The position numbers were made by a program, and so were the translations under genes. Shown here in pieces: positions 9,581 through 53,497 of a DNA stretch of 64,000 nucleotides (the stretch's first letter is position 1; each line of letters opens with the position of its first letter). The notes beneath the pieces were generated by a model that worked only from the letters and a program-made list of their open reading frames with translations, did no database searches and was not told the origin of the DNA. Source of the DNA: Oikopleura dioica (taxonomy: Eukaryota > Animalia > Chordata); assembly GCA_907165135.1 (NCBI GenBank), contig OU015569.1, forward strand, positions 11,470,001 to 11,534,000, in the 5' to 3' direction.

Positions 9581-10488
9581 CAGGGCTGGCAAATTAGGGT
9601 CCCGCCAGCCGCACTAATTTGAGTTAGAACCAGGGCTGGCAAATTAGGGTCCTAACAGCCGCACTACCGAAAAATTGTTAGGGTTCTAACTCAAAATTAG
9701 TGCAAATTAGTGCGGCATCCCCGTCCTACCCGTCCTATTTTTTCCTTGATATTTTTCGTCCATTAGGACCGAATCGCCGCCCTAACCGCACTAATTTGGA
9801 GGCTCTTTTTCATCATCCAATCGGCGCGCGCTTCCCACCAGGCGCGGAGGACAAATTGGTGGAAGATTGAAAAAGAATGCAGCTGAATGGATGAGAAAAC
9901 GAATGACCCGCCATGATTGGCGGACCAATAAGCGCGCCTATTTTAGGACGATTTTAGTGCGGCTTTTCCAACTCTCGTACTACTCGCACTAAAAAGTTAT
10001 AAAATGAGAGTTAGGGCCCTAACAATAGGGTTCTAACCAGGGCTGGCAAATTAGGGTCCCGCCAGCCGCACTAATTTGAGTTAGAACCCTATTGTTAGGG
10101 CCCTAACTCTCATTTTATAACTTTTAGTGCGAGTAGTACGAGAGTTGGAAAAGCCGCACTAAAATCGTCCTAAAATAGGCGCGCGCTTATTGGTCCGCCA
10201 ATCATGGCGGGTCATTCGTTTTTCTCATCCATTCAGCTGCATTCTTTTTCAATCTTCCACCAATTTGTCCTCCGCGCCTGGTGGGAAGCGCGCGCCGATT
10301 GGATGATGAAAAAGAGCCTCCAAATTAGTGCGGTTAGGGCGGCGATTCGGTCCTAATGGACGAAAAATATCAAGGAAAAAATAGGACGGGTAGGACGGGG
10401 ATGCCGCACTAATTTGCACTAATTTTGAGTTAGAACCCTAACAATTTTTCGGTAGTGCGGCTGTTAGGACCCTAATTTGCCAGCCCTG
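9581..10488. mobile_element. Non-autonomous hAT-type element with fold-back (palindromic) structure
   Basis: 8-bp TSD gtcagtcg (9573-9580, 10489-10496); termini CAGGGCTGGC..GCCAGCCCTG; arms 9631-10037 and 10080-10488 are near-perfect inverted repeats; the 50-bp terminal unit 9581-9630 is repeated at 10038-10087. Confidence 0.92.
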
Positions 10489-11502
10489 GTCAGTCGCCAA
10501 TTACAGGAATCGCCGCATGTTGAGCATCTCCAAAAGGTGTTTATTCTTTGAGTGTATAAAGAACGCACTCGACAGCGCATGTTCCCCCCAGTGATAAATT
10601 TTCTTCTGACGGGCAAATTGAAAAATTCTACCGCAGAGTCAATTTTTCTAAAGTAAGACGGCAGCTGCTCTTGTCAATTTTCGTCATAAGTTATTACTCG
10701 ACAAACAAACTTTCAAGTACCAATTTAATAAAAAAAGAAACAATTTCGCAAAGCGTTGTAGGAAAAATTCTACAGTAAAAAAAAAAAGAGAAATAAGAAA
10801 TTGCAAAAGAAAGAAAAAATGTCTTCGCAGCATCGCCGATCACTTCCATTTATAAGGTAAGGGTCAGAAAGAAGGCTATTTGCATTGTTTTCGAGATAGG
10901 ACTGAGGAATATCGAGATTCCTTCGAAATCTGCATTTGCTCTCGGAAGCTCTTCTTGACAATCAGCTTTACTTTCTTCCCCCTAGTTCGCGAAAAATTAG
11001 CTTCAGAATTTTAACGTTACCATCGATCTTTTTTTTTTGTAAGAGAAAGCCTTAATTTTTGGAGTAACCCTCAACCAATTTATCAGCGATTTTTCCAGCG
11101 AATTAGTGTTCTGATACCCTTAATCAATTACCAAACGAATTTCCGATCCATATTTTAAAGCCACTTTATCACTCATTTAACTGATAAAAATCGAAAAGCC
11201 ACTTTCGGCTTCGAGAATAAATATAGCCGCTGTCAGAGCGGCTTTTTATGCTTCATGCCTCGCACGCGGCTTTTCAAGTTTTATCAGCAAAATAAGTAAT
11301 AAACCGGTTTCAAAATACGGATAAGAAATTATTTTGCTAAAGAATTAAGGGTATCAGAACATTAATTCGCTAGCCGCGGCGATATTTGTTTCTCAAAGCC
11401 GCAAGCGGCTTCTCGACTTTTATCAGTAAAATTTTTAAGAAAATGGCTTAGAAATATAATTTTGCTGATAACTCAGACTTCACTAATTCTAGCGCTTATC
11501 CC

Positions 11503-18467: not shown

Positions 18468-19492
18468 AAATCAATCATAGAATAAATATGAATGCCTATA
18501 CCCTTAATAGAAATGCTTATTTCCAGAAAAAAAGTTAACTGTTTAACTATTTCAAGCAGCAGTTAATCCTCAAATAAAAAATCAGCCGAGAAATGTGTAA
18601 GCAGGAGATCAGAGAGAAAAAACCAAGTCCCGAATTTTCATTCGCTGCTGAGCGAAATTCGTCAATTGTTTAACTTTCAGTGCTAATTTTTCACGTTCAA
18701 CCGATTCTGCAGGGCGATTGCCGGATTCTAGATAAGAGACTTAATTCAAAGTTTTTTGACACCTCTTTTTCATTTCAGAGAAAGAGAAATTTTCGCCGAC
18801 TGGTTTCGTCAACTCAGGTAAAGAGAGAATTTTTCATTTTTTTAACAATTTTTTTTATTTTTTGTGAACAATTTTCTCGCTTTTGCAAAACCAGTTCCCA
18901 ATGCTCTTACTAGCGTTAAAATAGTTAGCTCATCATTTATATTTTTAAAAAGGCTAAGAGGCACCTTCGACCTGTCTCTGAAAACAAAGAGGAGTATCAG
19001 AGTTCTGATAGCAGTTAAATTACTTCGCTGGTTTGATGCCCTTTTTTCTGTTAATAAGCCAGCAAACTGTAATTGCGGTTTATCAGTAGTCCAAACCAAG
19101 AGATCCAAGATAATTGTGAAAATTCTCGATGAAAAAGCGGTCATTTGAACTTGATGCTTTTCGGACTTAAAAACGATTCATTTGCGATTAAGGGTGGGTC
19201 TTGCTTTTGATCGAATTTCAACCCCGTTGTCAATAAAGTAGCCCTCTGTTCGGGGTACAATAGTCACTCTTTACTTTCTTTGTTGCTCCTGCCTTTCTCT
19301 ATGTTTGCGCTTTTCCGGGCTAAATTTATTGAATTTCAAATTTACAAAAAACCGCCGCTGCGCCGCTTCATTTTTGCAATTTATCCGATTTTTCAAAAAG
19401 CAAAAGGGCTTTTTACTACTAAGGCTAAAATAAAGAGAAATCTTTGAATAAGAAAATCGTTTCATATCGTAAGTAAATTTCTTCCCAAAAAA

Positions 19493-19655
19493 GGGCTCGG
19501 CAACCTGTGTCCAAAACCTGAGTCAGGGCCAAAAACAGCATAAATGAAAAGCCGCCTAGCGGCTTTTTTGAAAATGAAGCCGCAGAGCGGCTTTGCCGAA
19601 ATAACCCTTTCAATCTATTTTTCAAACCCTGACTCAGTTTTAGGTTGCCGAGCCC
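19493..19655. mobile_element. MITE, same abundant family as 6946-7142
   Basis: gggctcggcaacctgtgtccaaaacctgagtcaggg ... ccctgactcagttttaggttgccgagccc. Confidence 0.85.
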
Positions 19656-28055: not shown

Positions 28056-31000
28056 ATGAGTAACCGTTTCGAACCAGCAAAAATGATTCCGCCGCGGAGC
28101 CGTCTCGTTTCTAGACCAACCCGTCCGCTCGATCTGTTGACGCGAGAGTGCAGTTTCAATAAGAATAAAATTGAAAGTTGCCTTTTTTATCATTTATTTT
28201 CGATTTCGGATTCTGAAAAGAGAAATAACTCTAAAAATCAATGGAAAGCGAGAACAGGGATCCTGGAGGAGAAGGATCGTCCAAGGAGCTCAATATTATT
28301 CAGCTCATAAGGAACTGGCTCAAATTAAAATTTTTTTACGCAAATTTTAGAACTGACCTCGACAACTTGTGTAGGAAACCCGAGTCAGGATCCAGAAATA
28401 GCTTTAATTTAAAGCCGCGGAGCGGCTTTTTCATTAATGAAGCCGCAAATCTACGAACAGATCGGGATGGCAAGTTTCAATCGCTCTTTCAGGACCCTGA
28501 GTCAGGTTCTGGAGCTCAGTTTAAGAATCACATGTTGAGCTATTGGAAAGAAAAGAGTTGGCAAACGACTCTCCTGAGATCAGAAACCTGAGTGCTACGC
28601 AGCTTCATCAAGTTCTGAATAACCAGTCGGCGATCAATGAAATCAACAACGACCAAAACTTGATTTTGGAGGAAAATGACGAAGAAATGCATACGCTTTC
28701 GCAGGAATAATTGCTCAAATTTTCGCTCAATTTGGATAATCTTTTCTTGAAAAGGCCCATTTTGCAATTCGATTTTAGGAATTCGGATCAACTCAAATCT
28801 CCAGTCCTGAGAAAAGCCAGACTCAGTCAACAACATACAGTCCTCTTCCAAGTAAGAAAAGAGATTCGGAATCTCAGATTCCTCCCTTTTCATCCCTAAT
28901 CGCTTAATTCAGTCGGCATTCTTTCTGATTCTCCTCTTCCAGACTCTGAATTCGAGCTGCCACCGAGTCAGAATTTCAACTTTCCAAATTTCTCGCAACT
29001 GCCGGTTTTCGACGATCCAAATTTAATCGAAACAAGGGATATTCTCAGTCCGACTCAAGCACGCCAGCTAAATAGCATTCCAGAAGAAGAAGACGGAAAT
29101 CAATTCAGTCAAATATATTCAGGTCTTGGTCAAGAAAATTAGTTCCCGTCTGGGCTGGGCTACATGAGTCAGTATCTTTAAAGAGCAATGGGACGGAAAA
29201 ATATATATTTTCGGTTTTGACAAAATGTCGTAAACGTGACATTTTCAAAAATCTATAAATGCAGTTATGTCGAGCTGGATCTGCCATTTATAAATCTGCA
29301 AAAAAATTTTGGGATTTCATTATTATGAAGTGTCATTTTCTATGATCCAAGGACGCTTCATCTTATTTCAGATTTAAAATTACTCACCGCAATCCAAAAA
29401 TATTGCGTAATTCATGATTTTCTTGTATAATCAATTAATTTATAACACCTACACTATTAATATTAAATATATCGCCGTCCTCCGCCAGGATATGGCCACT
29501 TAAGGTCGAATTCGGTCGGGTTAGGCCGGAGGATCTCCCGGAGGACCACCTTGGTGGAAGACTAATAGCTGGAAGACCAATATTTACAAAAATTAATAAA
29601 TAGCCATGTAGGGCCAGTAATTGCCATTTTATGGCCATTTTATGGATCCATGTTATGGATCCATGGGAAAAGAATTTCCCTCCGACCTCTAAGTTCTCTG
29701 GTAATACTGGAATACCACTCTGCCCGCGAACAAAAATTCCCCTTCCGGGGAATCTAAAATCGTGACGCCTTAGCCAGCTTAGACCGCAAGTCCTTCAGCC
29801 GCTTGAATCTCGCCGGAGGCCAATTGACCGGTCGGTCCACCCAGGGAAAACTCATTGTGCGCCTTCCCAAAATTTCACATTTGATACTCTGGAACAACTT
29901 ATCCTTGGCCACAAAGACGTCCTTTCGTGGACATAAATAAGTCGGAGCAGCATCAATCTTCGCCACGGTCCGTTTAGTGAAAGTGCCGCGCTCCAAAAAT
30001 TCCGAATACGGCATTAGGTGCATTCCTATACAAATTTCAACAAGAAGAAAAAACTCAAAAATACCATGTTGAGGAACTCCGTCCTCAGTATACAGAGTGT
30101 CTGAGAGGATCAATTGAGAGACGGAAATGAAGCCCAAGGGAGAGTCAAGAATTGGATCTCCCAGTTTGGAAACCCAGCTGAGCCCAAAAGCAGTAGATGG
30201 AGTTTCTAAATACAAGGCGTCTACCTCCTCGGCGGGTATAACTGTAATGGAAAAGCCATTTCGGAAGGTATCTTCGTAGGAATAGCTTGTCAACGACCCC
30301 AAAAGGTTCTCCACCAAAACAGGCGAGGCACCGTCAGCTCCTCTCAACTCCTCTCCGTCAGCATTCCTTTTCCCCTTTTTCTTCTTTTTATGCCTTTGCA
30401 GCTAAAGAAAGAATTTTATGTATTAAGAAAATATAAGGAAACACGAAGTCTATTCATATATCACAATTAAAATTTCTCGTTTCATTTTATCTTCTATTTT
30501 AATCGGCTGTCGAGGGAAAAAATAATTATTTCAAGTCGGGACCGGGGCCAACCGGTGACGGCTGGGCGGCCCAGGGCTCGAGTGAACACCCTGGGCAACA
30601 CCCAGCTGATCCCTTCTCTAATTAACGGATTTTTTTTCTTTTGCGCCTTCTCTGCTTTTTATTTTCCAGACTGATTATGCGCGCGGTGCTTGCTTGCGAG
30701 TTAAGGGGGCGCTGCTGAGTTGCCGGGTGGGTCGGCGCTTGCTCTATCCCCGTGGCTATAATCTGCCTATCCTAGTCAGCATTTTTTTGCTGATTGAGTA
30801 AAGAGATATTTTAAGAAAAAAAAGAGAGAGATGGCGATTAATTTCAATGCTTATTTGTCTATCATGGAAGAATGCTTTGAAAGGCCTACCCTAAGGGAAA
30901 GAACTGCGGCTTTGCTGGCGGTAGAGAGGCAATTCCACAAATTTCTAGCTCTAGTGAGTAAATATTGGTGTGAGTTTAATATAGTTGTTAATTATATAAA

Positions 31001-34000
31001 TAAATTATTAAAATTATAATAATAATATATATAAAATAATTATTTTTAATGATTTCCTATTGCTAATTAATGGCTTAAGGTTCACGCGAAGAGGGATCTT
31101 CGTCGTGGATCTCCTGCCGGGGGCGCTGCTGGACGCGGAGATCAAGTCGTAGGTGATCCAGCCGTCGACGCTGGTGCTGAGGACGTTCCAGATGAGCTAG
31201 TCGCTCTCCTACGCGAAGGAGTGGCGGAAGCCGTGGCGGCCTGGGTAGCCAGATCTGTTGATGCTGGCGCTCGGGCCAGCAAGACGTTGACAACGCTGAT
31301 GAAGGCGACATTGCCGGTGGAATCGATGTCGTAGAAGGGGTCGATGGCGTTGCTCCAGTCGACGGTGATGTTGGAGCCATCGGCGAAGGTCAAGTCGACA
31401 ACGTCACTGGAGCCGTCGTTGATGGTCAGGTCGACAACGTCGCTAGAGTCGATGCTGATGTTCAAGTCGACAACGTCGCTGGGGCCGACGCTGATGTTCA
31501 AGTCGACAACGTCGCTGGGGCCGACGCTGATGTTCAAGTCGACAACGTCGCTGGGGCCGACGCTGATGTTCAAGTCGACAACGTCGCTGGGGCCGACGCT
31601 GATGTTCAAGTCGACAACGTCGCTGGGGCCGTAGACGACTTGGCCGCTGTCCGGACTGGACGCTCGCCGGAGGTGGCCTCGATTTACGTCTGTTGCGCGG
31701 CTCTGTCAGCTCGGTTTCGCTGGCAGGGCCGTATGTAGCGGGTATATCTCGTTTCCAGCGGATCAGACCGTCTCGAATCCGTCGGCGCACTTGCCGGGGG
31801 CCAAGTCAACCTTACAATCTATCTTGGTCGGTCGCCTGCGGAGAGTTAGAGATTGAGAACCTTTTTGGGGTTCTCCAGATTTCCTCGTTCCTGGCGAGTG
31901 ACGTTGTCGAGGAGACGGATGATGGTCTCTTTCAGGGTATTGTTGAATTTTTCTCCCAATTTTAGCCCTTTTAGGTGTATATTGTATGACGACCGAAGAA
32001 TTTATCCGGAGGTCAGACCTCTGGCCGGAAGTTGTCGAGGAAATCAATGATCGGGAGCCGTTGTTATTGGTTTCCGAATCGATGACTCCCGATGAGGTTG
32101 TTAACAATTGTCGACGCGAGAATAGGGCGCTGCTGTCGAACCTGGCTCCATTCATGAAGGCGCGTGATTTTGACGATAAAACTCAATTTTTGCGATACAT
32201 TAGGTTTCGCCAAAATTACAGGCGGCTCTACTGTGAGAATCTGGAGCTGTCTTTGGCGAAAGTTGCTCGTGCCAAAATTTTCAGTCCACAGACATTTTGG
32301 GCTGAGAAGGTGGAAATTGACTTGTGAAACGAGGTTGTTCGCCCGTATGGTTTCGACGCAAATTTCATCAGGTGATTTGTCTTGTGACGTTTTTCTCATT
32401 TTTTGTAGGAGAACGTGGAAGGATGCCCCTGATCATCTGTACGGCTTTATGCGGCAAGCCTTGATCCTGTTTCGACGAAGACTTGCTATGATGAAACTTT
32501 CTTCCACGGGTCGCATTCTTGTTACTCCTCTGCCGAATCGTCAAGAATAAACTCCCACTTCAGTCACCAGTGTGGATAACTGATGGTGGGCCTTGCATAG
32601 ACTGAGTATCTACGGTGGCGCGGAGCCTTATATGGTGGCGGAGCGGCCACCCGCGGCGCGGTGGGGCGGCGCTGCCACCTAAGACTACCACCGCCACGGA
32701 GTGGTGCCGCTCCTCCACCGGGCTCGGCTCCACCGTCTACACAGCCCGAAGCAAATGTTCCGCTAATTACCTCTCAAATCCCAATTTTTTCACTGTATTA
32801 GATTACGTAAAATGAAACGTATTGTACTTTCAGACATATATATTTAGAACTTCCACTTCACTATAATGAAACTTATTCCATAATTGTTATCCAATCTAAA
32901 CAATCACTATAAATTATAGTTATATAATTTATATAAGAAAATCATGAATTACGCAATATTTCTGGATTGCGATGAGTAATTTTAAATCTGAAATAAGATG
33001 AAGCGTCCTTGGATCATAGAAAATTATATAGCAGAAAAAAAACCGAAAAAATAAGTACGCCTGGTCCCTAGGCGAGTCCGTAACTTTTTCTTAGATCGCC
33101 CCGCCCACGCTTCATAATAATGAAATCCCAAAATTTTTTTGCAGATTTATAAATGGCAGATCCAGCTCGACATAACTGCATTTTTAGATTTTTGAAAATA
33201 TCACGTTTACGACATTTTGTCAAAACCGAAAATATATATTTTTCCGTCCCAATGTCTTTTGACCATCAAATAGGCGCGAGCCAAAGAAGTGCACTCCTTT
33301 TTTCTGAACGAGAAACTTCGCCAGTGACGATGATGCCTCCTCCAATACCTGCAGCTCCAAGCTCTTACCGCGCCACTCCGAACCCGAGTCACATTCGCAG
33401 CCCGTCGCAAGAGTCCTCCGGCTGCCTCTCCGCAGTTTCCGTCAAGTTGGCAAGACCGACCCCGAAAAAACGGCGCAGTTACAATCGCAGCACCTATCAG
33501 AGCATGAGTTACGGAACGAACAGAATTACTCAACAAGAGAGCAGTGCTTTTCCACAATCAGCAATCAAGAAAATTCATCAAACGAACGAGTCCTTTGGGC
33601 TGTCGGAAAGGCTCAATTTGACCTTCTATTTACTTAGATATTGATAACGCACGCTGTCATTGACTCTTTGAAAATGAGCCCAAAAATCAGAAATTCACTA
33701 CTGAAAATCAAGCCAGCATATTTTCAAAAGGCCAGAACATCAATCCGAAGACTAATTCCCGAAGAACCGTTTCCCAGATTTCCACGACAACAAACAGGAC
33801 AACCGAAAAGACAGCAACGGAGCAGTTCAACTTGAATGCCTCTTCCAACATGATGTTTCCGCCCCCAGAAATCCCGAAATCCAGGAGCGGCGAAAAAACG
33901 CGCTCAAGTTCGAAACACAATTCTCTGCCACTGCCAACGATGACTTCTCCAGGCTTCGATGCCGACTTTCCAAGTTTGAATCTTCCAACCATTCCCGATT

Positions 34001-36994: not shown

Positions 36995-37090
36995 CATGCT
37001 TGTAAGAGGCGACAGGGATGGGAGGAAGTGGGCTTGAAGACGATTCCTACCTGTTAGACAATCGAAATCGGACTCAAAAATGGGATGAGT
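36995..37090 (-). ncRNA. Spliced-leader (SL) RNA gene; 40-nt SL exon 37090-37051, followed by a GT donor
   Basis: Minus strand ACTCATCCCATTTTTGAGTCCGATTTCGATTGTCTAACAG|GTAGGAATC.. matches the O. dioica SL as I recall it. The 3' end of the RNA is approximate. Confidence 0.93.
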
Positions 37091-37342
37091 GAAAGACAGC
37101 CGTGCTCGATTTCGAGGTCGTTTTGTCGCTGCACGCTCCATTTTTCGACTTCTTTTCAGAAGAGCGCTCACAGGAGGGCGCTAAATCCTCTTGCTCCAGC
37201 AGGAATTGATCTTGAGCACGTCTTTGCTTCAGCTTTTCTCTACGGGAAAATGAATTCATCAGTTCCTTTCTTATTTCAAATGATAGCTAGAAAATCTTCT
37301 CAGCCGTCAAAAAGGATGATCAATTTTCGGGAAAAGTCAAAA

Positions 37343-37461
37343 TGCTTAGCGCACGGGGTATTCCCAACCGGTCACCCATGTAAGTACTAACCCCGCCCGT
37401 CGTAGTTTGACTTCAGTGATCGGACGAGAACTGGTTTATTCTACGCGGTATGTCGCTAAGC
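37343..37461 (-). rRNA. 5S rRNA gene (119 nt) followed by a T4 Pol III terminator
   Basis: GCTTAGCGACATACCGCGTAGAATAAACCAGTTCTCGTCCGATCACTGAAGTCAAAC..GTTAGTACTTACATGGGTGACCGGTTGGGAATACCCCGTGCGCTAAGCA-TTTT: canonical length, internal control region and terminal stem. Confidence 0.97.
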
Positions 37462-43890: not shown

Positions 43891-46800
43891 ATGTACAACG
43901 GGGTGGGTCTCACCACCGCCCGTGGTTCGGGCACCAACGGCTATGTCCAGACCAACATGGCATTTATCCGCAAGTCGAGGCTCGAGACAAAAGTCAAGAC
44001 CGACGATGATATCCGAAAAATGGAAGCGATGCTCAATCGAAAGCCCAATCAAGGTACAGTTTCTCTCGTCGTCGAAGAAAGAAGCTCCTCTAGTTTAAAA
44101 AAGATAGTATCAATTTATTGCGTTTTTAGAAATTTTGTCACATCAGGCGAAGAGAAAAGTCGAAGTAAAAGTGCTCGAGCTTCGTGAAGCGATGGAAGAT
44201 GACGGCAAATATGACGAAGAAGAGATTGAGGTACTCTTCCTTGTTTTTTCTTAATAAATCATATTGGTAATCAGGCTAAATGCGTGACGTTCCGAGAGAT
44301 GTTGCTGAATAAGGAAGGCTTTTTGGACACAGTGGAGGCAAAGTCGTCCCGCTCGAACGAAACGCACCAGTTGGCGGCGCAAAACGAAATGAAGAACAAA
44401 AAAGCGTGTAGCGCGTTTGGCATTCGAGAAGACTACAAGCCTGGTGCAGCTTTTACTGAAGGTAAAAAAGAAAGACTTACTAGTGTAGTTGGGGAATAAT
44501 TTCAAGGCAGCGCGAGTTTGTTTGATCGACAAGTTCGAGCATCGTGCTGGTTGAATTGTAGTTGAGCATGATTTTCGATGAAGTGATGCTTTCACCAGAG
44601 CAGGAGTGTTCTTTGAGCCGCCATTGAATTTTGAAATGGTGGATTTTGAGATGAGTTGTGTTGTTTTGAAAGGGAGCGATTTCAAACGTTTTCATCGTGT
44701 ATTCTTTACCATCCGTTTTTGTACGTTTTTCAGTCTCGCGCACCAAACTATCATCTACCTTAAGGGGGGGGTCGACGAGAATTTTTCAGGGGTGATCGTA
44801 ATTTCTCTTGTACACATGGTCTGGCTATGAAACTTATATTTTTGGAATTGTCAGATCCTCCCGAATCCGTTAAGCCTAAAAACATTTGAGAAAAATGAGA
44901 TTTAGGGGGTGAAATTATGAAAAATGTAAAAAGAATGGCCATTTTTGGTGCATTTTCGCGAAAATGCCCCTACTTAGAGGGGATTTTCGACCGATTTTTT
45001 CTGGCGAAAATTTTTTCTAGTTTTCGCCGCCTGATTATTTCAACCCTTTTCTATCCACCAGTATACTCAGATTTTCCCTATCTAATCCGGTTTTCCCGCA
45101 TTTTTGGTCACGGAAATCCCGATTCTCGTCGACCCCCCCCTTAAGGGACCCCGCCGACCGAGCCGCGCGCGCGTGTCACGCTCTTTTTCCTTTCAACTTT
45201 TCGTTAGGATATTTTCATTAGATTTTAATGAAATTTTACATGCCAACTAAACTTTTTATTCTCTTTCTCGTACATTTTTTAAAATCTTTCTATCTTTTGG
45301 CTACGCCGAGTTATTGCTGAATCTTGGGCGCCCGCTTTCAAGTGTACATAAGTACTCGAAATCTTCGGATTGACACTTCGAGACTACCACCATTGAAAAG
45401 CCCAGGCTTTCTTTGACAAGGCCTACTTATTGAGATTTCCTGGAAGCGTTTACTTATCTGATTAGCGAGGGATTAATGAGGGTCACCTGGAGCGCTCAGC
45501 GTGAACTTCTCGCCCGTTTCAATTATGCTCGCGCGACTTCAGCCATGGAAATTGGCAAAAAATTTTGAAGACAAGAATAACAATTTTTTTATTAAAACAA
45601 AATCAATATTTTCAGAGAATAAATAAGATAAATAAAGAATGATTATTTAACCTTCGACTTCCTCCTCATCATCTATGAAATCCGAAGCTGAATTTTCTTC
45701 CTCAAATTGAAGTAGCTCTTCGAAAGTTGGTATTTCATCAGCATCATCAAGATCTTTCGCCTCCAAAGATTGAATATGGGCCTGGCGAGCATTGTCGATG
45801 TCACGCTGAACCTGAGAAGCATAGGTACCAAGGTCAGCAAATTGTTTCTGTGTTTGTCGCCTTTTGTTTTGAATTTCCGCTTTTTTCTTCATTTTTACAT
45901 CACATTTCTTTTTGCTTTCTTCATCAAGTCGCTGAAGACGATCGAGTCCAACATTTGAAACTTTGTACTGTAGTTTCTTATGAATTTGACGAATCGCATT
46001 CACTTCACCTTCATTGTAGATCAGGATTGCCGTCGCTCCCGCGACTTCATATCGATAATTTAGAGGAGAAGCATAGGTTCCCTTGACCCATAATCGTCGA
46101 CGGATCATTTCAGCATGTAGATATTCAACTGGGCTTGTTGTTCCAGTTTGACCACACTCTCTGATGTAATTTTCGCCAAAATGTGTGCTGATAAATTTTC
46201 GTAAGCGCTCTTCGATGATTTCTTGTGTCAAATTTCCAAAAGGTTGAAAGATGCCAGGTCCTCGTGGGCAGTTTTCATCGCACATCGTGTGGTCGCTGTA
46301 GGCGTGTCGCAGGGTTTTCTCCATTTTATTCATGGCATCCTCATGTGACCACTCACCAGATGCTCGGTTCGTGATGATTTCCATGATAGCAAATTTGACT
46401 CGCATGTGAAACTGGAGAAACTGCTTCTTTGTAAATTTGTCGGCACCGGAACCTGTCTTGAAGTTTCGCAAAAATGTTCCATATATATTCTTTATGATGT
46501 GAGCAACATCCGAGTGAAATGCAAGATTGATCAATGGAATCATCAATTGACGGCATTTCTCAGCATCGATGTAGACATTTGTATTTGATGGGTCTCGGAT
46601 TTTGGCGTCGGCGTCGCATGCGACTTGGATGACATGATCTGGGAGAGCTTTGTGGATCGGGAGGAGTGTTTCTTCAAAAACATGTCTTGTGCCGATTTTT
46701 TCAAGTGCAGAAGAAGCTGTGCCAGTCGGTGCGACAGTTCCTCGCTGGTACTTTTTCAGGTGTTCGTCTGAGATTTCTTGTCGCTTCTTGACAACTTTTG

Positions 46801-49800
46801 ATCCAATGATCTTGTATTTTCCATCGACTTTTGCTGCGCAGCTTACCAGACATCCTTGAGCACTGTTTTTCTTGATGCCTGAAATAAAAGTGTTAATTTT
46901 TTCTTAGAAAGGGTAAAAATTTACTTTGAAACGGTGAAAATTTACTTAGAAAGGGTGAAAATTTACTTAGAAAGGGTGAAAATTTACTTGGGCAGGGTGA
47001 AAATTTACTTAGAAAGGGTGAAAATTTACTTGGGCAGGGTGAAAATTTTCTTGGAAAGGGTGAAAATTTACTTAGAAAAGGTGAATTTTTACATAGAAAA
47101 ATTATTTTTTTGTGTAATCAGTTACCTGAATCATTGTATGTGCCATCTACAGCGACAGATACTGTCTTCTCACTGGCATTTTTTCTTTCCGAAATGAGCA
47201 AATTACGCGCGTTGAGCATTGACTGATTTGCAAGATCCATGATGATTTTGTCGACTTTGTCTTGATACTTGTCGGCAGTAGAGGCTCCCTTGACAAAATC
47301 AGGCAACCGTTTGTGTCCACCAATCGTTTCTCCACTCATCCCTATGCCTGCAAGTTGTCTTTGTGTCTGGGTATCTGTAATTCCAGCCATGGTTTTTGCT
47401 GCTTGAAAGAGAAGATTGAAGGTTTCATCGACGAGCCAGCATCCAAGAGAATGTTTGCAGAAAGAGCAGGACACAGTCGCGTAGAAATTGAGAAGAACAT
47501 TGGTTGACAAGCCGAACCTCAATGTATGAGTCTTCTTACATTTCGGACAAGCCGTTTGGTTGAAGAGAAAGTCGAGGTTGAGGTTATCAGCGAAAAAACA
47601 GTTCTTGGTCTTTCAACCTTGATTTTCTTCGATTCATTTTTTGCCATTACTTTGGCGCTTTGTTGCACCCATGGTGCAATTTTCCAAAAATAAGGCTTAT
47701 ATGCAATTTGTGTTTGCATTCTAGCGTCAGAGAGCTCCTATCAGATGAAGAAAACCTAACAAGCATTGGTCTCTTTCATTAGTTCGGCTGATTTTTGTCT
47801 CCTCTGGTATCACCCGCGGAGCGCACGCGCCAATCCCGCTGAGCGCTACAGGTGACCCACATTAATCCCTCGTTAATCAGATAAGTAAACGCTTCCAGGA
47901 AATCTCAATAAGTAGGCCTTGTCAAAGAAAGCCTGGGCTTTTCAATGGTGGTAGTCTCGAAGTGTCAATCCGAAGATTTCGAGTACTTATGTACACTTGA
48001 AAGCGGGCGCCCAAGATTCAGCAATAACTCGGGGTGGAAAAAAGATAAGAGAATTTTAAAAAGTCTATGAGAAAGAGAATGAAAAGTTTAGTTGGTGTGT
48101 AAAATTTCATTAAAATCGAATGAAAAAATCCCGACGAAAAGTAGCAGGGAAAAAGAGCGAGGAACGCGCGCGAGGCTCGGTCGGCGGGGTCCCTTAAACC
48201 GAGTAAGATCAATCCAATTACTGATAACCCCACCATTACACCGTACATCCCTGTACAGCTCTTGTCGTTGCATCTGTACGCAAACAAGCCGAGTTTTTTC
48301 CTGTAGCTCGACACGTACACCAGATAGATCTTGCCGTCATCCACGAGATGCAAAAAGTGTCGCTTGTTTTTACCCGCTGATAAAAGAACAGCTCGAACTA
48401 TGGGTTCGGTTTCAGTAGAAGTAGCGGGCTGAGGGTAATGTAAATAAGGGTAATAGTGACGAAACGGTGATGGTATTTGAAGGGGCGTTTCTTCGAAAAG
48501 TTGCTGTAAAAAACTTGATGGTTCGCTTTGAAAATTGAGGTTGTAGTCAATATATTCAGCAGTACACGACAGCAGTGTACTACACGTTTCATTAGGATCA
48601 GCTTGTTCGTTTAGTAGCGATTGTAGCCATTGAATAGTTTCATACGACTCAGGCGACAGTATTTGATCCAGAGCGTTGAGTGCTGCAATGTTCCTGCTAC
48701 CTAAAAAGCTCATTCAAAGCGGATTCAGATCAGTTTTCGGTAGAACTTTGTGACTTTTGTTAAATAGTACCTTGAAAATCATCCCCTTGCTCCATTTTCT
48801 CTTTTATTTCACAGCCTTTAGTAAATGAAGTTCCTAAGACAGAAATCTAGAGCATTATTTTTGTATGTAATCAACTCTAGAAAGACAAAACTAATCACCT
48901 GTTTCAGAATACCAACTTGCACGAGCAGAAGATGCAAGGAAGAGAGCAGAAGCTCGCGAGCAAGAAAAGGTCGAGCGACAAAAGCGCCTTGAAAAAGTGA
49001 TCATCGAGCGAAAGCAAAAAGAACTGGCGGACAAGGCGAAATACAACTGGATTGATTCGGACGAAGAAGACTACGAAAAGAAGAAAGCGGAGAGAAGGCA
49101 AAAGAAAAAGTCGAGAAAAGACCAGGATAAGGCGGCGCCTGAGACGGAGGTGAAACAAGAACGACCGGATTCGGACATGGAAATAGACGATGTTGTCAAG
49201 CAGGAGCGAGAAGAAGCCTCGCCCAGAAGACGATCACCCAGTCCAAAGGGTCGAAGATCGAAGAGTCCGAGAAGAGGACGCCCCTCGCCAAGCCCAAAGA
49301 GACGAAGAGAGTCTCGCAGTCCAAGAAGACGAAGATCTCGAAGTCCCCCTCGCAAAAGGCGATCGCCCTCTGCAAGTCCAAGGAGAAGACGATCTCGTTC
49401 AAAGGTAAATACTCTCCTTTTTTTAACGAAAATAACGTAGTTCTTCTTACAGACTCCTAAGAAAAGCCGTGACGACGAGCTGGTGGCTCCCGAAATTGCC
49501 GAAAACATCAAGAAATCCGTACTAAAGCTGATTCCCAAAAGTGAGAAACGATCATCGCCCGACCGTCGCCGTCGAGAACGAAGCCGCTCGAAGTCGCGAA
49601 GCCGCAGCAGAAGCAGCGATCGACGAAGACGGAGGAGAAGCCGCTCCCGCTCGCGTAGCCGCTCTGGAGATCGACGCCGACGACGAAATCGACGAAGCCG
49701 ATCTTCTTCGTCGAGCTCGTCTTCTCGGTCGAGATCCAGATCTAAATCAAGAGATAGACGCAGAAACAGACGCTCAAGAACTCGCTCTCGATCAAAGGTA

Positions 49801-49970: not shown

Positions 49971-50429
49971 GTCCTTAATGCATATTTACCCAGGGTCAAT
50001 GATTGGGATCTTTTTCGGTCATCAAAATTATATATCAAATTGCAATTCAACCGCGCCCTCTTGTGGCTATTTGTTTAGGCGTATCTCTGCAGGTGATTTT
50101 TGTCTTATAAACAAGATAATTTGCAAGGGACAAAAATATATTCTAAAATGTAACCCAACCTAGAGTTTAACTCCTAATAGCATTCTCCCGATTCCAACGC
50201 TCTATGCTGCATAGACACCAAAAATGTTGATTTTTTATAAAATGAATTCTAAATACATAGAATCACTTAACCAGCACAGTGGATCCTTATGTCATAAATA
50301 ACGGTTTTGCAATCACAGAGAAGCGTATGCAGTTCCTCTTTTTGTAACCTCTTCCTTTATAAAACCTATTTTAGATCCTGATCTGCAATCCAGAACTGCC
50401 ATCAAATGGAAAAGAAACCATCAACTTAA

Positions 50430-51183
50430 GGATATAAGCTATGAATTTGAACTTTCGTAGCGCCTAAATGCGACGTAGGATCATTTTCATTTCAAAAGCA
50501 GTCCTACGTTAAATTGCACGTAGAACTCAAATCTGGAGTTTTTGAAAAAAATTTTATGGAAAATTTTCTCTCTAGAGCGATTTCAAATCTTACGCTCTCG
50601 ATTGCTCGAATTTTTTCCATTGAATTGCTAAAACTAAACCGTGTCTTTTATTTTGATGATGTTAAGCTAGAAAATTGACGGGCTTTTATTTCAAAACTCC
50701 CTCAAATTTTCATTCTAGCGTTTTCCTCTTTCTTGCTCGAGTTTTTCTTCTTTTTGTGCTTTTTCGCGTGCAACCAATCAAAGCGCTCGGGGCACCCGCG
50801 CCACTCTCACGGAAAAGAAGAGTTGAGAGAGCGAGCGCCCATCGCGCCGCTTTTTACACTATTCACGCGCTGGGTAAGCCTCATGGAAATGGCTCTAAAA
50901 TCGTTTTCGGTCGGAATTAGGAAAAACTGATCCGTCAATTTTGTAGATAAGGGCTAAGACAAGTTATTCATCGAAAAAACTCGACCGATTTAGTGGAAAA
51001 ATTTCGAGAAATCGAGAGCGTAAGATTTCAAAACGCTCTAAAAGGAAAATTTTCTATAAAATTTTTTTAAAAAATACCAGATTTGAGTTTTACGTCCATT
51101 TTTAGGTAGGATTACTTTTGAAGTGAAAATGATCCTACTTCGCATTTAGGCGCTACGAAAGTTCAAATTCATAGCTTATATCC
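50430..51183. mobile_element. 754-bp Kolobok-type MITE with ~190-bp TIRs
   Basis: TTAA|GGATATAAGCTATGAATTTGAAC..GTTCAAATTCATAGCTTATATCC|TTAA. Confidence 0.88.
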
Positions 51184-53497
51184 TTAAATAAGAAAAAATA
51201 TCGACATAAACTTGTTTTTGTAAACATTCACAACCCTCTTTACTTGCTTTTTTCCAAATAAAAAATACCCCTCTGTGCAAAAAACAGCGACCGTCTTTTT
51301 TTATTTCCTATCTATAAAAAAATGCGTTCTTTCTTCGCGGGTTAGGATTTGCGGCATTCTTCTTTTGGGTTGTAATGGACAGAACAAATATTGTTTGGCG
51401 AAACTCATACTGAGAACAAAACAAAAAAAACGGCGCCCTTGTTAGTTGTTAGGCGAATTCTGAAATTGGACTTTTTTCATTCTTGAAGGAGAGAGGTTTT
51501 TTCTGGTAAAGGAGAAAGAAAACCTTTTGATCAAATCACCCAGAGCGCGAAAAGAAAAAGAGCGGGAGACCAAGTTGGCCCCACTCCAGCTTTCCTCGTA
51601 TACCTAAGGGTATATCCGCCAGAGAACTCGGTGAAAGGAGCATTTTTTACACGCGCAAGTTTTTTATCACCTTGTCATTCAGAGAGAGGACTTGAATTTT
51701 CTGACACTTTTTTGTTCTTGATATTCCTCGCGAGAAATCGTAAGGGAGTAGACAGGGAGAATTAAGTTTTTCTTCTATCTTTGTTTATTTAGTTAAGGGT
51801 GTTGCTGTGTTAAATTTAAGAGAAAAGTCCCTATTCTTGTGCTCTACCCAAACGGGCTGCAGCTGTTTATTTTCTGCCAAATTAGTCTCTCATCTGTTTA
51901 TATTCGCTCTTAAAATTATGGTGGAAATATTCAAATTAAGGGAACAGCTATGGCCTTCAATTTTCACGCTCCAAGTCCAGTAGAAAATTTCAACTTCAGA
52001 TAATTGAGAAAATCTCAGTTTTCGTCAAATTTTGAAAGAGTCTGTCTGAGATCTGTCAAATTAAACTGTGGGATTATCACTTTTATTTTATTTTTGTTCG
52101 AAAAAAGAGAATTTTTTTGGATTTCTATTTCTTCCTTGATTTCCAAAATCTTAGAAGAGTAAATTTAGTAAGTAGCGGCTTTTGAGTTTGAGGTGTATCT
52201 TACGAGCGTGATGACAAGGGCAGAATCGTAATTGCTCGCGTTTCCGCGTTTCTGAGATTGCCAATCATAAAGATTCATTAAATCTAAACCTGAGCATTTT
52301 TTTAACGATCAAAGACATTCATCGTGCATTATTATGGAAGAATACACCTAGAGCAAACACTAGAAAGAAACAATCATGTCTCGCACTTTCATTCTTCCGA
52401 TCAAAAACAAGGTACAAATTTTCAATAAGTTCTTTTCATGGGTTCAGCAACCTGTGTTCAAAACCTGAGTCAGGGTCTGAAAGATGTTAAACTAAAAGCC
52501 GCAAAGCGGCTTCGCCAAAATAAAATCTATTTCTTTTTTAACTCTGCTGAAGATCTTTCAGGCCTGACTCAGGTTTTGGACAAAGGTTGCAGAACCCAGT
52601 TCTTTCCTCAATTAATTCTCTCGAAACAGTATTTTCATCGCCCAAAATCACATGTTCAAATCACTGGCAAAAGAAGACTGCGAGTCTTGAATACATTCAA
52701 TCATTTTCTGTCTAAAATTATTGTGTCCCTCCTTATCTATCAAATGCGTTTACGACAGGATGATCCGATTCAAAAATTTATTTATTTTTTGACGAGCTCC
52801 AGTCTCAAGAGCAAAAGGCATCAAGAGGATATTAAGTTCAAGACTATTTCTTTTTCAATTCTTCTGTTTACTTTGCTGAACTTGGTTTTTGAGCGACTGA
52901 GAGCTACAGTAGTTCAAAATTGACACTTCAATCTCAAAAGAAAAAAGAGACGAGAAAAGGGTTCTGAAACTGGGCTCGGGAACCTGTGTACGAAACCTGA
53001 GTAAGGCTCTGAAAAGCGAAGAATACGCGGCTCTTCATTTTTACTCATGAAAGTCAGCCCTGACTCAGGTTCTGTACACAGGTTGCCTAGCCCAATTTTT
53101 CAGAATACTAAATTTGATTGATTGGAAAATTAGTTCTGACAGCTCTAAGGCTCTAGAATGAATGCAAGTCTAGCCAACCGGAACACTTGAGTCTTTTCGA
53201 ATTTTCAGAAAATTTCTTGTCTTTTTTCGGCAAAAAGAGAAAGGTCTGGAAAACAGAAGTCACAGGTGTTTTTCACTTGTTTTCAAAGAGAGAACTGTTT
53301 TCGTCTTTTTTATTTTGGTGATCCGCAGCTTTGCGGTGAATCTGGATTAACTGTGTATTGATACGTCTGTAAAACTCCAATCTGAGTAACTTCACAAACA
53401 GACAAAAAGAAACGCGCTTTTTTCCACACTTACCTTTTTCGTGAGCAAGAAAGTCAAGTTTTTGTTTTTTCAGAAATCGCGCTCGTCAAATGAGAAA

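Follow-up and report, generated by a model that had tools for sequence, protein, structure and literature searches.

Several described classes of DNA element resemble the locus considered here. Elements with terminal inverted repeats (TIRs) that lack a transposase and hold genes or gene fragments in their interior are known as Pack-MULE or Pack-TIR elements, and their cargo usually consists of recent pieces of identifiable host genes. Foldback elements have arms of tandem subrepeats that form most of the element. In the PIF/Harbinger group, the target-site duplication is the 3-bp sequence TWA (PMC4482050). Here we describe a two-gene unit of 4,061 bp that is bounded by TIRs (positions 29190-33250) in a 64,000-nt stretch of the Oikopleura dioica genome (assembly GCA_907165135.1, contig OU015569.1, positions 11,470,001 to 11,534,000 of the forward strand). 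This whole stretch is referred to as the window, and all coordinates are given within it. There is, in our judgement, an even chance that the unit represents a single, non-autonomous copy of a cut-and-paste DNA element (class II, TIR) lying in a short O. dioica intron. Its two genes stand head-to-head and read as true but very distant paralogues.

The arms of the unit (Table 1) are nearly identical as inverted repeats, with 97.9% likeness between the outer segments (29190-29333 and 33107-33250) and 96.9% between the inner segments (29335-29430 and 32929-33024). This likeness ends abruptly at the outer GGG on the left and the outer CCC on the right. Exactly 2 copies of the terminal 32-mer are present in the window, compared with 0 in 100 shuffles. 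Directly outside the arms, the flanks match over 3 nt only, and other duplication lengths, from 2 to 9 nt, do not fit. A preliminary description of the locus had reported TIRs of about 235 bp with GGG..CCC ends and an AAT duplication; the arms measured here, 241 and 322 nt long and 97-98% alike with AAT on both sides, agree with it. The right arm is the longer one owing to an 82-nt block (33025-33106) without counterpart in the left arm. Within this block, 15 nt (33039-33053) form a 93% copy of the terminal motif at 33222-33236, which may represent a repeated binding site. No inverted termini were found within either arm alone, and hence an arm is not a complete small element, that is, not a complete miniature inverted-repeat transposable element (MITE).

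The minus-strand gene had been placed at 29754-30401, and an open reading frame (ORF) was indeed found from 29757 to 30401, containing an in-frame 39-nt GT..AG intron (30026-30064). An upstream ATG at 30485 opens a 7-codon exon that is followed by a 63-nt phase-0 GT..AG intron; this first exon is predicted from the ATG, the GT..AG borders and the phase alone. With it, the minus gene model has three exons and about 209 codons, forming what reads as an intact, and probably working, ORF. A Lys/Arg-rich patch lies near the N-terminus, directly after the 63-nt intron, and suggests a nuclear protein. The degenerate second copy of the C-terminal tandem unit (Table 1) starts in the last codons of the ORF and extends past its end.

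On the other side of the centre, the plus gene begins with an ATG-containing exon (30831-30953), which an AT-rich phase-0 intron of 126 nt separates from a basic stretch. Then come the GC-rich block, the domain shared with the minus gene (31693-31935), a 38-nt GT..AG phase-1 intron (31937-31974) and a helical part (31977-32324). A candidate last exon lies beyond an 85-nt intron, and its stop codon overlaps an AATAAA. No plus frame is open throughout the GC-rich block (0.6 kb); a reading through it would have to change frame twice, or else pass two stops and change frame once. The block contains a clean 36-bp tandem array at 31390-31631 (6.7 copies, 93% matches), with older copies upstream of the array. 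The conserved half of the gene thus appears intact, and the front half seems to be interrupted by an expanded 36-bp minisatellite block. Because of this interruption, the plus gene may be decaying, or it may contain unrecognised (possibly non-canonical) introns, or the assembly may carry indels in the GC-rich repeat. Of the gene proposed earlier at 30831-32550, the 38-nt intron, the 126-nt intron and the conserved domain were recovered, and a clean spliced ORF across the GC-rich block was not. In addition, 14 nt of each 36-bp unit (31395-31624) match, in reverse complement and at 93-100%, part of the coding sequence for the plus gene's conserved domain (31897-31910). A third family member within the block was considered and rejected, since the minus-strand ORF there was not significantly family-like at the protein level; no bacterial relative of this ORF was found.

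The relationship between the two genes was tested exon by exon, or with the unspliced minus ORF. BLASTP of the minus ORF against pieces of the plus gene reported no match. Smith-Waterman alignment (BLOSUM62, gap penalties 11 and 1) of the exons upstream of the shared intron gave a score of 67 vs 24.7 ± 4.1 in 2,000 shuffles (z = 10.3). Among the nine frame combinations, the claimed pair alone scored (z = 11.6), with z ≤ 0.9 for the other eight. In the upstream alignment (30305-30069 vs 31693-31935), 22 of 79 columns were identical and 37 positive. Nucleotide identities at the three codon positions were 0.37, 0.48 and 0.19, so that third positions were at or below random, and the score at the DNA level was weak (z = 3.2). 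Downstream of the shared intron, an unanchored comparison was not significant (z = 0.6). When the comparison was anchored at the exon start fixed by the intron, the best-prefix score was 27 vs 1.5 ± 2.7 (p about 1e-4), and the homology reached about 30 residues beyond the phase-1 intron (29934-30023 in the minus gene, 31977-32066 in the plus gene). The shared domain thus comprises about 110 residues, and each copy is interrupted within a Gly codon by a phase-1 intron, the two positions lying one residue apart in the alignment. Compared as DNA, the mirrored spacers and the centre showed no significant similarity.

These results uphold the preliminary description where it stated that the two genes align after splicing, that phase-1 introns of 39 and 38 bp sit in the same Gly codon, apart from the offset of one residue, and that a phase-0 intron followed by a basic stretch occurs in both genes (of 63 nt in the minus and 126 nt in the plus gene). 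A lack of significant profile alignment between the proteins had been named as an outcome that would speak against the proposal, and the Smith-Waterman alignment was significant. As identity persists at the protein level only and synonymous sites are saturated, the duplication is probably old, and both copies were probably kept coding for a long time. The two phase-1 introns (30026-30064 on the minus strand, 31937-31974 on the plus strand) are identical at 14 of their first 16 nt, against only 19% identity at third codon positions of the exons that flank them. The likeness of the introns could reflect T-rich composition together with splice constraint, or a conserved intronic signal.

Next to this internal relationship, relatives of the two genes were sought outside the unit. 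Stop-to-stop ORFs of 70 aa or more gave no transposase, Myb/SANT or other family in Pfam at E ≤ 1. Across Pfam at this threshold and PHROGs, no transposase, integrase, reverse transcriptase, Myb/SANT, MADF or THAP domain was detected, and the PHROGs search as a whole returned no match. Neither sequence searches nor a two-sequence profile found a match in the PDB, and with Pfam or PDB the two proteins showed no signature typical of a nuclease or a recombinase. The genes fill about 2.4 kb of the 4-kb unit and therefore leave no room for a DDE enzyme. Word-indexed protein searches (targets of 0.55-1.75 x query length) returned no match for the minus ORF or for the helical exon of the plus gene. 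A phmmer search of the minus ORF against 1.84 billion representative proteins yielded two hits to tandem-repeat or low-complexity translations (16 and 6 stretches), which were set aside as spurious. Exact-product look-ups for four ORFs of the window found none on record. AlphaFold2 models made without an alignment had mean pLDDT (predicted local distance difference test) values of 30.8 for the minus ORF and 51.6 for the helical exon of the plus gene, the latter model being all-helical. Foldseek comparison of the helical-exon model with the PDB gave no match at E ≤ 0.001 (best E = 1.3, TM ≤ 0.33), and the low hits, an assortment of helical hairpins that included human-virus capsid entries, were taken as noise.

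Based on these searches, the two genes appear to form an orphan family with no recognisable relatives. Hence, the family is as unrecognised as it had been called, and the stated absence of a DDE transposase and a Myb/SANT protein holds in Pfam at E ≤ 1 and in the PDB. The proposed modelling with AlphaFold and Foldseek was run, with the low confidence and the lack of structural matches just given, and a match to a Harbinger accessory protein or transposase, named beforehand as evidence to the contrary, was not found. A virus-derived origin, also put forward in the preliminary description, gained no support from the protein, profile or fold searches (minus ORF in 1.84 billion proteins, PHROGs, Foldseek).

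The unit as a whole appears to sit in a short intron of a host gene on the plus strand. Open plus-strand exon stretches lie on either side (28907-29122 and 33274-33641), and the GT at 29123 and the AG at 33273 connect them in compatible phase, with a Gly as the split codon. Without the unit and one AAT, this intron would measure about 87 nt, and the median length of O. dioica introns is 48-51 nt (PMC8008620). The host-exon ORF had no relatives in the word-indexed protein search, with the same target lengths as above, and the host gene is therefore an inferred one.

Table 1 Features of the two-gene unit and its surroundings (window coordinates).
Feature	Position	Strand	Basis or remark
Inferred host-gene intron	29123-33273	+	GT..AG, phase 1; frames and splice sites read; 4,151 nt
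Left AAT, putative 3-bp target-site duplication	29187-29189		Read from sequence
Left terminal inverted repeat	29190-29430	+	241 nt; begins GGGACGG; 97.9% and 96.9% to right arm
Degenerate second copy of minus-gene C-terminal unit	29658-29783	-	tblastn within window, 15/42 identical, E = 3e-5
Minus gene model	29754-30485	-	Exons 30485-30465, 30401-30065, 30025-29754; introns 63 and 39 nt
Shared domain, minus copy, upstream of phase-1 intron	30069-30305	-	Smith-Waterman
Central region between the two start codons	30486-30830		345 nt, partly GC-rich
Plus gene, as one part	30831-32550	+	Not one open reading frame
GC-rich block	31080-31692	+	About 60% G+C vs 30-45% around; largely 36-bp units
Shared domain, plus copy, upstream of phase-1 intron	31693-31935	+	Smith-Waterman
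Right terminal inverted repeat	32929-33250	-	322 nt; ends CCGTCCC; includes 82-nt block
Right AAT, putative target-site duplication	33251-33253		Read from sequence

If the unit is a non-autonomous DNA element, it would have entered the host intron as a single piece, creating the 3-bp duplication, and any movement would depend on an enzyme able to recognise the GGGACGG ends and encoded outside the unit. The parts of the unit stand in mirror order (arm, 320-380-nt spacer, gene and centre, then gene, spacer and arm again), which suggests that it arose from a half-element as an inverted dimer; the arms would then have been kept similar through the divergence of the genes. The two genes would be transcribed outward from the 345-nt centre, which we presume to be a shared divergent promoter. 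Our guess is that the two proteins are cargo or accessory nuclear proteins and not the mobility enzyme. Several observations weigh against this reading. No further copy of any part of the unit was found within the 64-kb window, and two scans of Joint Genome Institute (JGI) metagenome contigs with TIR words gave 0 matches; since only one copy has been seen, mobility is unproven, and mobility and superfamily alike are deduced from the sequence. For a single copy, matching AAT flanks have a 1/64 probability of arising by accident, and AAT differs from the TWA of PIF/Harbinger. The arms differ by the 82-nt block. As for a partner transposase, the sole transposase-like ORF nearby lies in a TTAA-flanked element whose arms share the first 5 nt only. 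Finally, arms that are nearly identical around genes with saturated synonymous sites require something further to have happened: either the arms evolved in concert or the unit was put together recently.

Among described kinds of element, PIF/Harbinger comes nearest by duplication length and GG ends. Shared with this part of the PHIS superfamily are a flank repeat of 3 nt at an AT-rich target, GG at the start of the TIRs, a length of about 4 kb and two genes (PMC4482050). In contrast, the flank of the unit is AAT and neither TWA nor TNA, and the unit lacks a DDE transposase, a Myb/SANT and an MADF protein by Pfam, although a non-autonomous member would also lack the transposase. Within this superfamily, arm lengths near the 241 nt of the unit (up to 259 bp) are reported for ISL2EU alone, which has a 2-bp AT duplication (PMC4482050), and the two genes of the unit are paralogous to each other, unlike those of PIF/Harbinger. 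Because the flank is AAT and not TWA, neither Harbinger protein is present and the arms are far longer than usual for the superfamily, we do not claim membership; an affinity to the group, which the preliminary description had brought into the comparison, is accordingly not established, given the TWA duplication of the group (PMC4482050) and the absence of both its proteins.

With Pack-MULE and Pack-TIR elements, the unit shares TIRs without a transposase and an interior made up of genes rather than mobility genes. However, its cargo has introns and an old internal duplication, and no parent gene was recognised. Foldback or long-TIR elements and inverted dimers are similar in their long inverted arms with subterminal motif repeats and in their mirror layout, whereas the arms of the unit make up only 6-8% of its length and its mirror image survives at the protein level only. 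Nor does the unit conform to a MITE (under about 0.8 kb, non-coding, high copy number), given its 4,061 bp, its two genes and the one copy seen.

A comparison within the window is offered by another TIR element, at 45141-48197, with arms of 364 nt that are 92% alike and likewise begin GGGAC. It differs in having TTAA instead of AAT at both ends, its arms are unrelated to those of the two-gene unit beyond 5 nt, and it contains no relative of the two orphan genes. Inside it, the ORF 47118-47522 (minus strand) weakly matches a Mutator-like transposase family (PF20700, E = 0.0012, below the cut-off). An ORF of 299 aa (45647-46546, minus strand) is without match, and a 21-bp tandem array occupies 46868-47134. 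This neighbour is possibly a decayed autonomous DNA transposon.

We also weighed other explanations of the two-gene unit. It could be a local, non-mobile palindrome in which a host segment with one gene was duplicated in inverted orientation, the genes then diverged, the outer 240 nt were gene-converted, and the AAT is coincidental. The mirror symmetry of the whole unit and the single copy seen in the window and metagenome scans would fit, as would the inverted-repeat gene arrangements of O. dioica, for example in 5S/SL (spliced-leader) units (PMC8008620), and the nearly perfect palindrome elsewhere in the window (9629-10490). However, it would be odd for conversion to be limited to the non-coding outer arms while the interior drifted to 28% protein identity, and the mirrored spacers have no DNA similarity left. 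The sharp stop of the arms at GGG/CCC together with the matching 3-nt flank, and the location within an otherwise short intron, also argue against a palindrome, and we regard it as unlikely. A different possibility, and one we consider distinctly improbable, is that an ordinary pair of host genes nested in a long intron happens to be bracketed by two separate, oppositely oriented insertions of one and the same repeat of 240-320 nt. Two independent copies might well differ by a block such as the 82 nt seen between the arms; short repeats abound in the window, and the AT-rich inner junctions permit several readings of a flank repeat. Yet the arm, lacking inverted termini, is not a complete MITE, no solo arm copy was found within the 64-kb window, and AAT is common to the outer flanks. 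That the bracketed genes are mirror paralogues would add a second coincidence.

The genes themselves are at issue in the remaining two alternatives. The unit could be an autonomous mobile unit of a new kind in a chordate, in which the mirror-image orphan proteins themselves attach to the long arms and perform or direct its movement or maintenance without a known transposase fold. This would account for two genes long kept coding within the arms, each with a basic patch near its N-terminus, and for a family without relatives in the searches made; the second ORF of the PHIS group Pangu is likewise without a known motif (PMC4482050). Proteins of about 200 codons with no nuclease or recombinase signature in those searches, the interruption of one of the two genes and the single copy seen make us think this very improbable. 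Still harder to credit is the idea that the ORFs were never genes and resemble each other only as a result of DNA repeats or composition. The absence of homologues in any search and the low-confidence AlphaFold2 models are in line with it, but it conflicts with a similarity limited to one frame pair (z = 11.6 vs ≤ 0.9), with conservation of codon positions 1 and 2 while the third is at or below random, with the weak DNA-level score (z = 3.2), and with the matching position of the 38- and 39-nt GT..AG introns in the two genes.

The rest of the window is unusually poor in recognisable genes, as none of its 14 ORFs of 150 aa or more matched Pfam, and it holds many short inverted-repeat families and several TIR-bounded elements. 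On the minus strand, an exact 40/40 match to the O. dioica spliced-leader exon (sequence per PMC6883708) followed by GT lies at 37053-37092, and a 5S rRNA gene (37343-37461, minus strand, 93 bits) about 250 nt away completes one SL/5S unit, an arrangement known in O. dioica (PMC8008620). This pair marks the window as DNA of O. dioica or of a lineage very near to it. A 762-bp MITE-like unit at 50426-51187 has 200-nt arms that are 89% alike and TTAA at both ends. The nearly perfect palindrome at 9629-10490, with several nested arm pairs that are 100% complementary (the longest 271 nt), could be real or an assembly artefact. At least 13 sites (e.g. 28351-28449, 19489-19616 and 52436-52512) carry members of a short repeat family, in both orientations, whose core is CCTGAGTCAGG and which has GCCGC..GCGGC hairpins; one copy lies about 740 nt upstream of the two-gene unit. 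Direct repeat pairs at 15065-15246/16114-16295, 1804-1966/3819-3981 and 60412-60467/63945-64000 (96-98% alike, 1-3.5 kb apart) are local duplications or further repeat families.

The O. dioica genome is among the smallest in animals and has tiny introns, and to our knowledge few DNA transposons have been described from it. In one assembly, 44% of repeats are unclassified (PMC8008620). If the unit is not mobile, it represents a small palindromic gene duplication. If it is a non-autonomous DNA element, a 4-kb insertion has been tolerated by an intron of roughly 87 nt, in which pairing of the arms in the pre-mRNA would reunite the host splice sites. The unit would then offer a concrete case, in the O. 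dioica lineage, of gene cargo travelling with a DNA element or born inside it.

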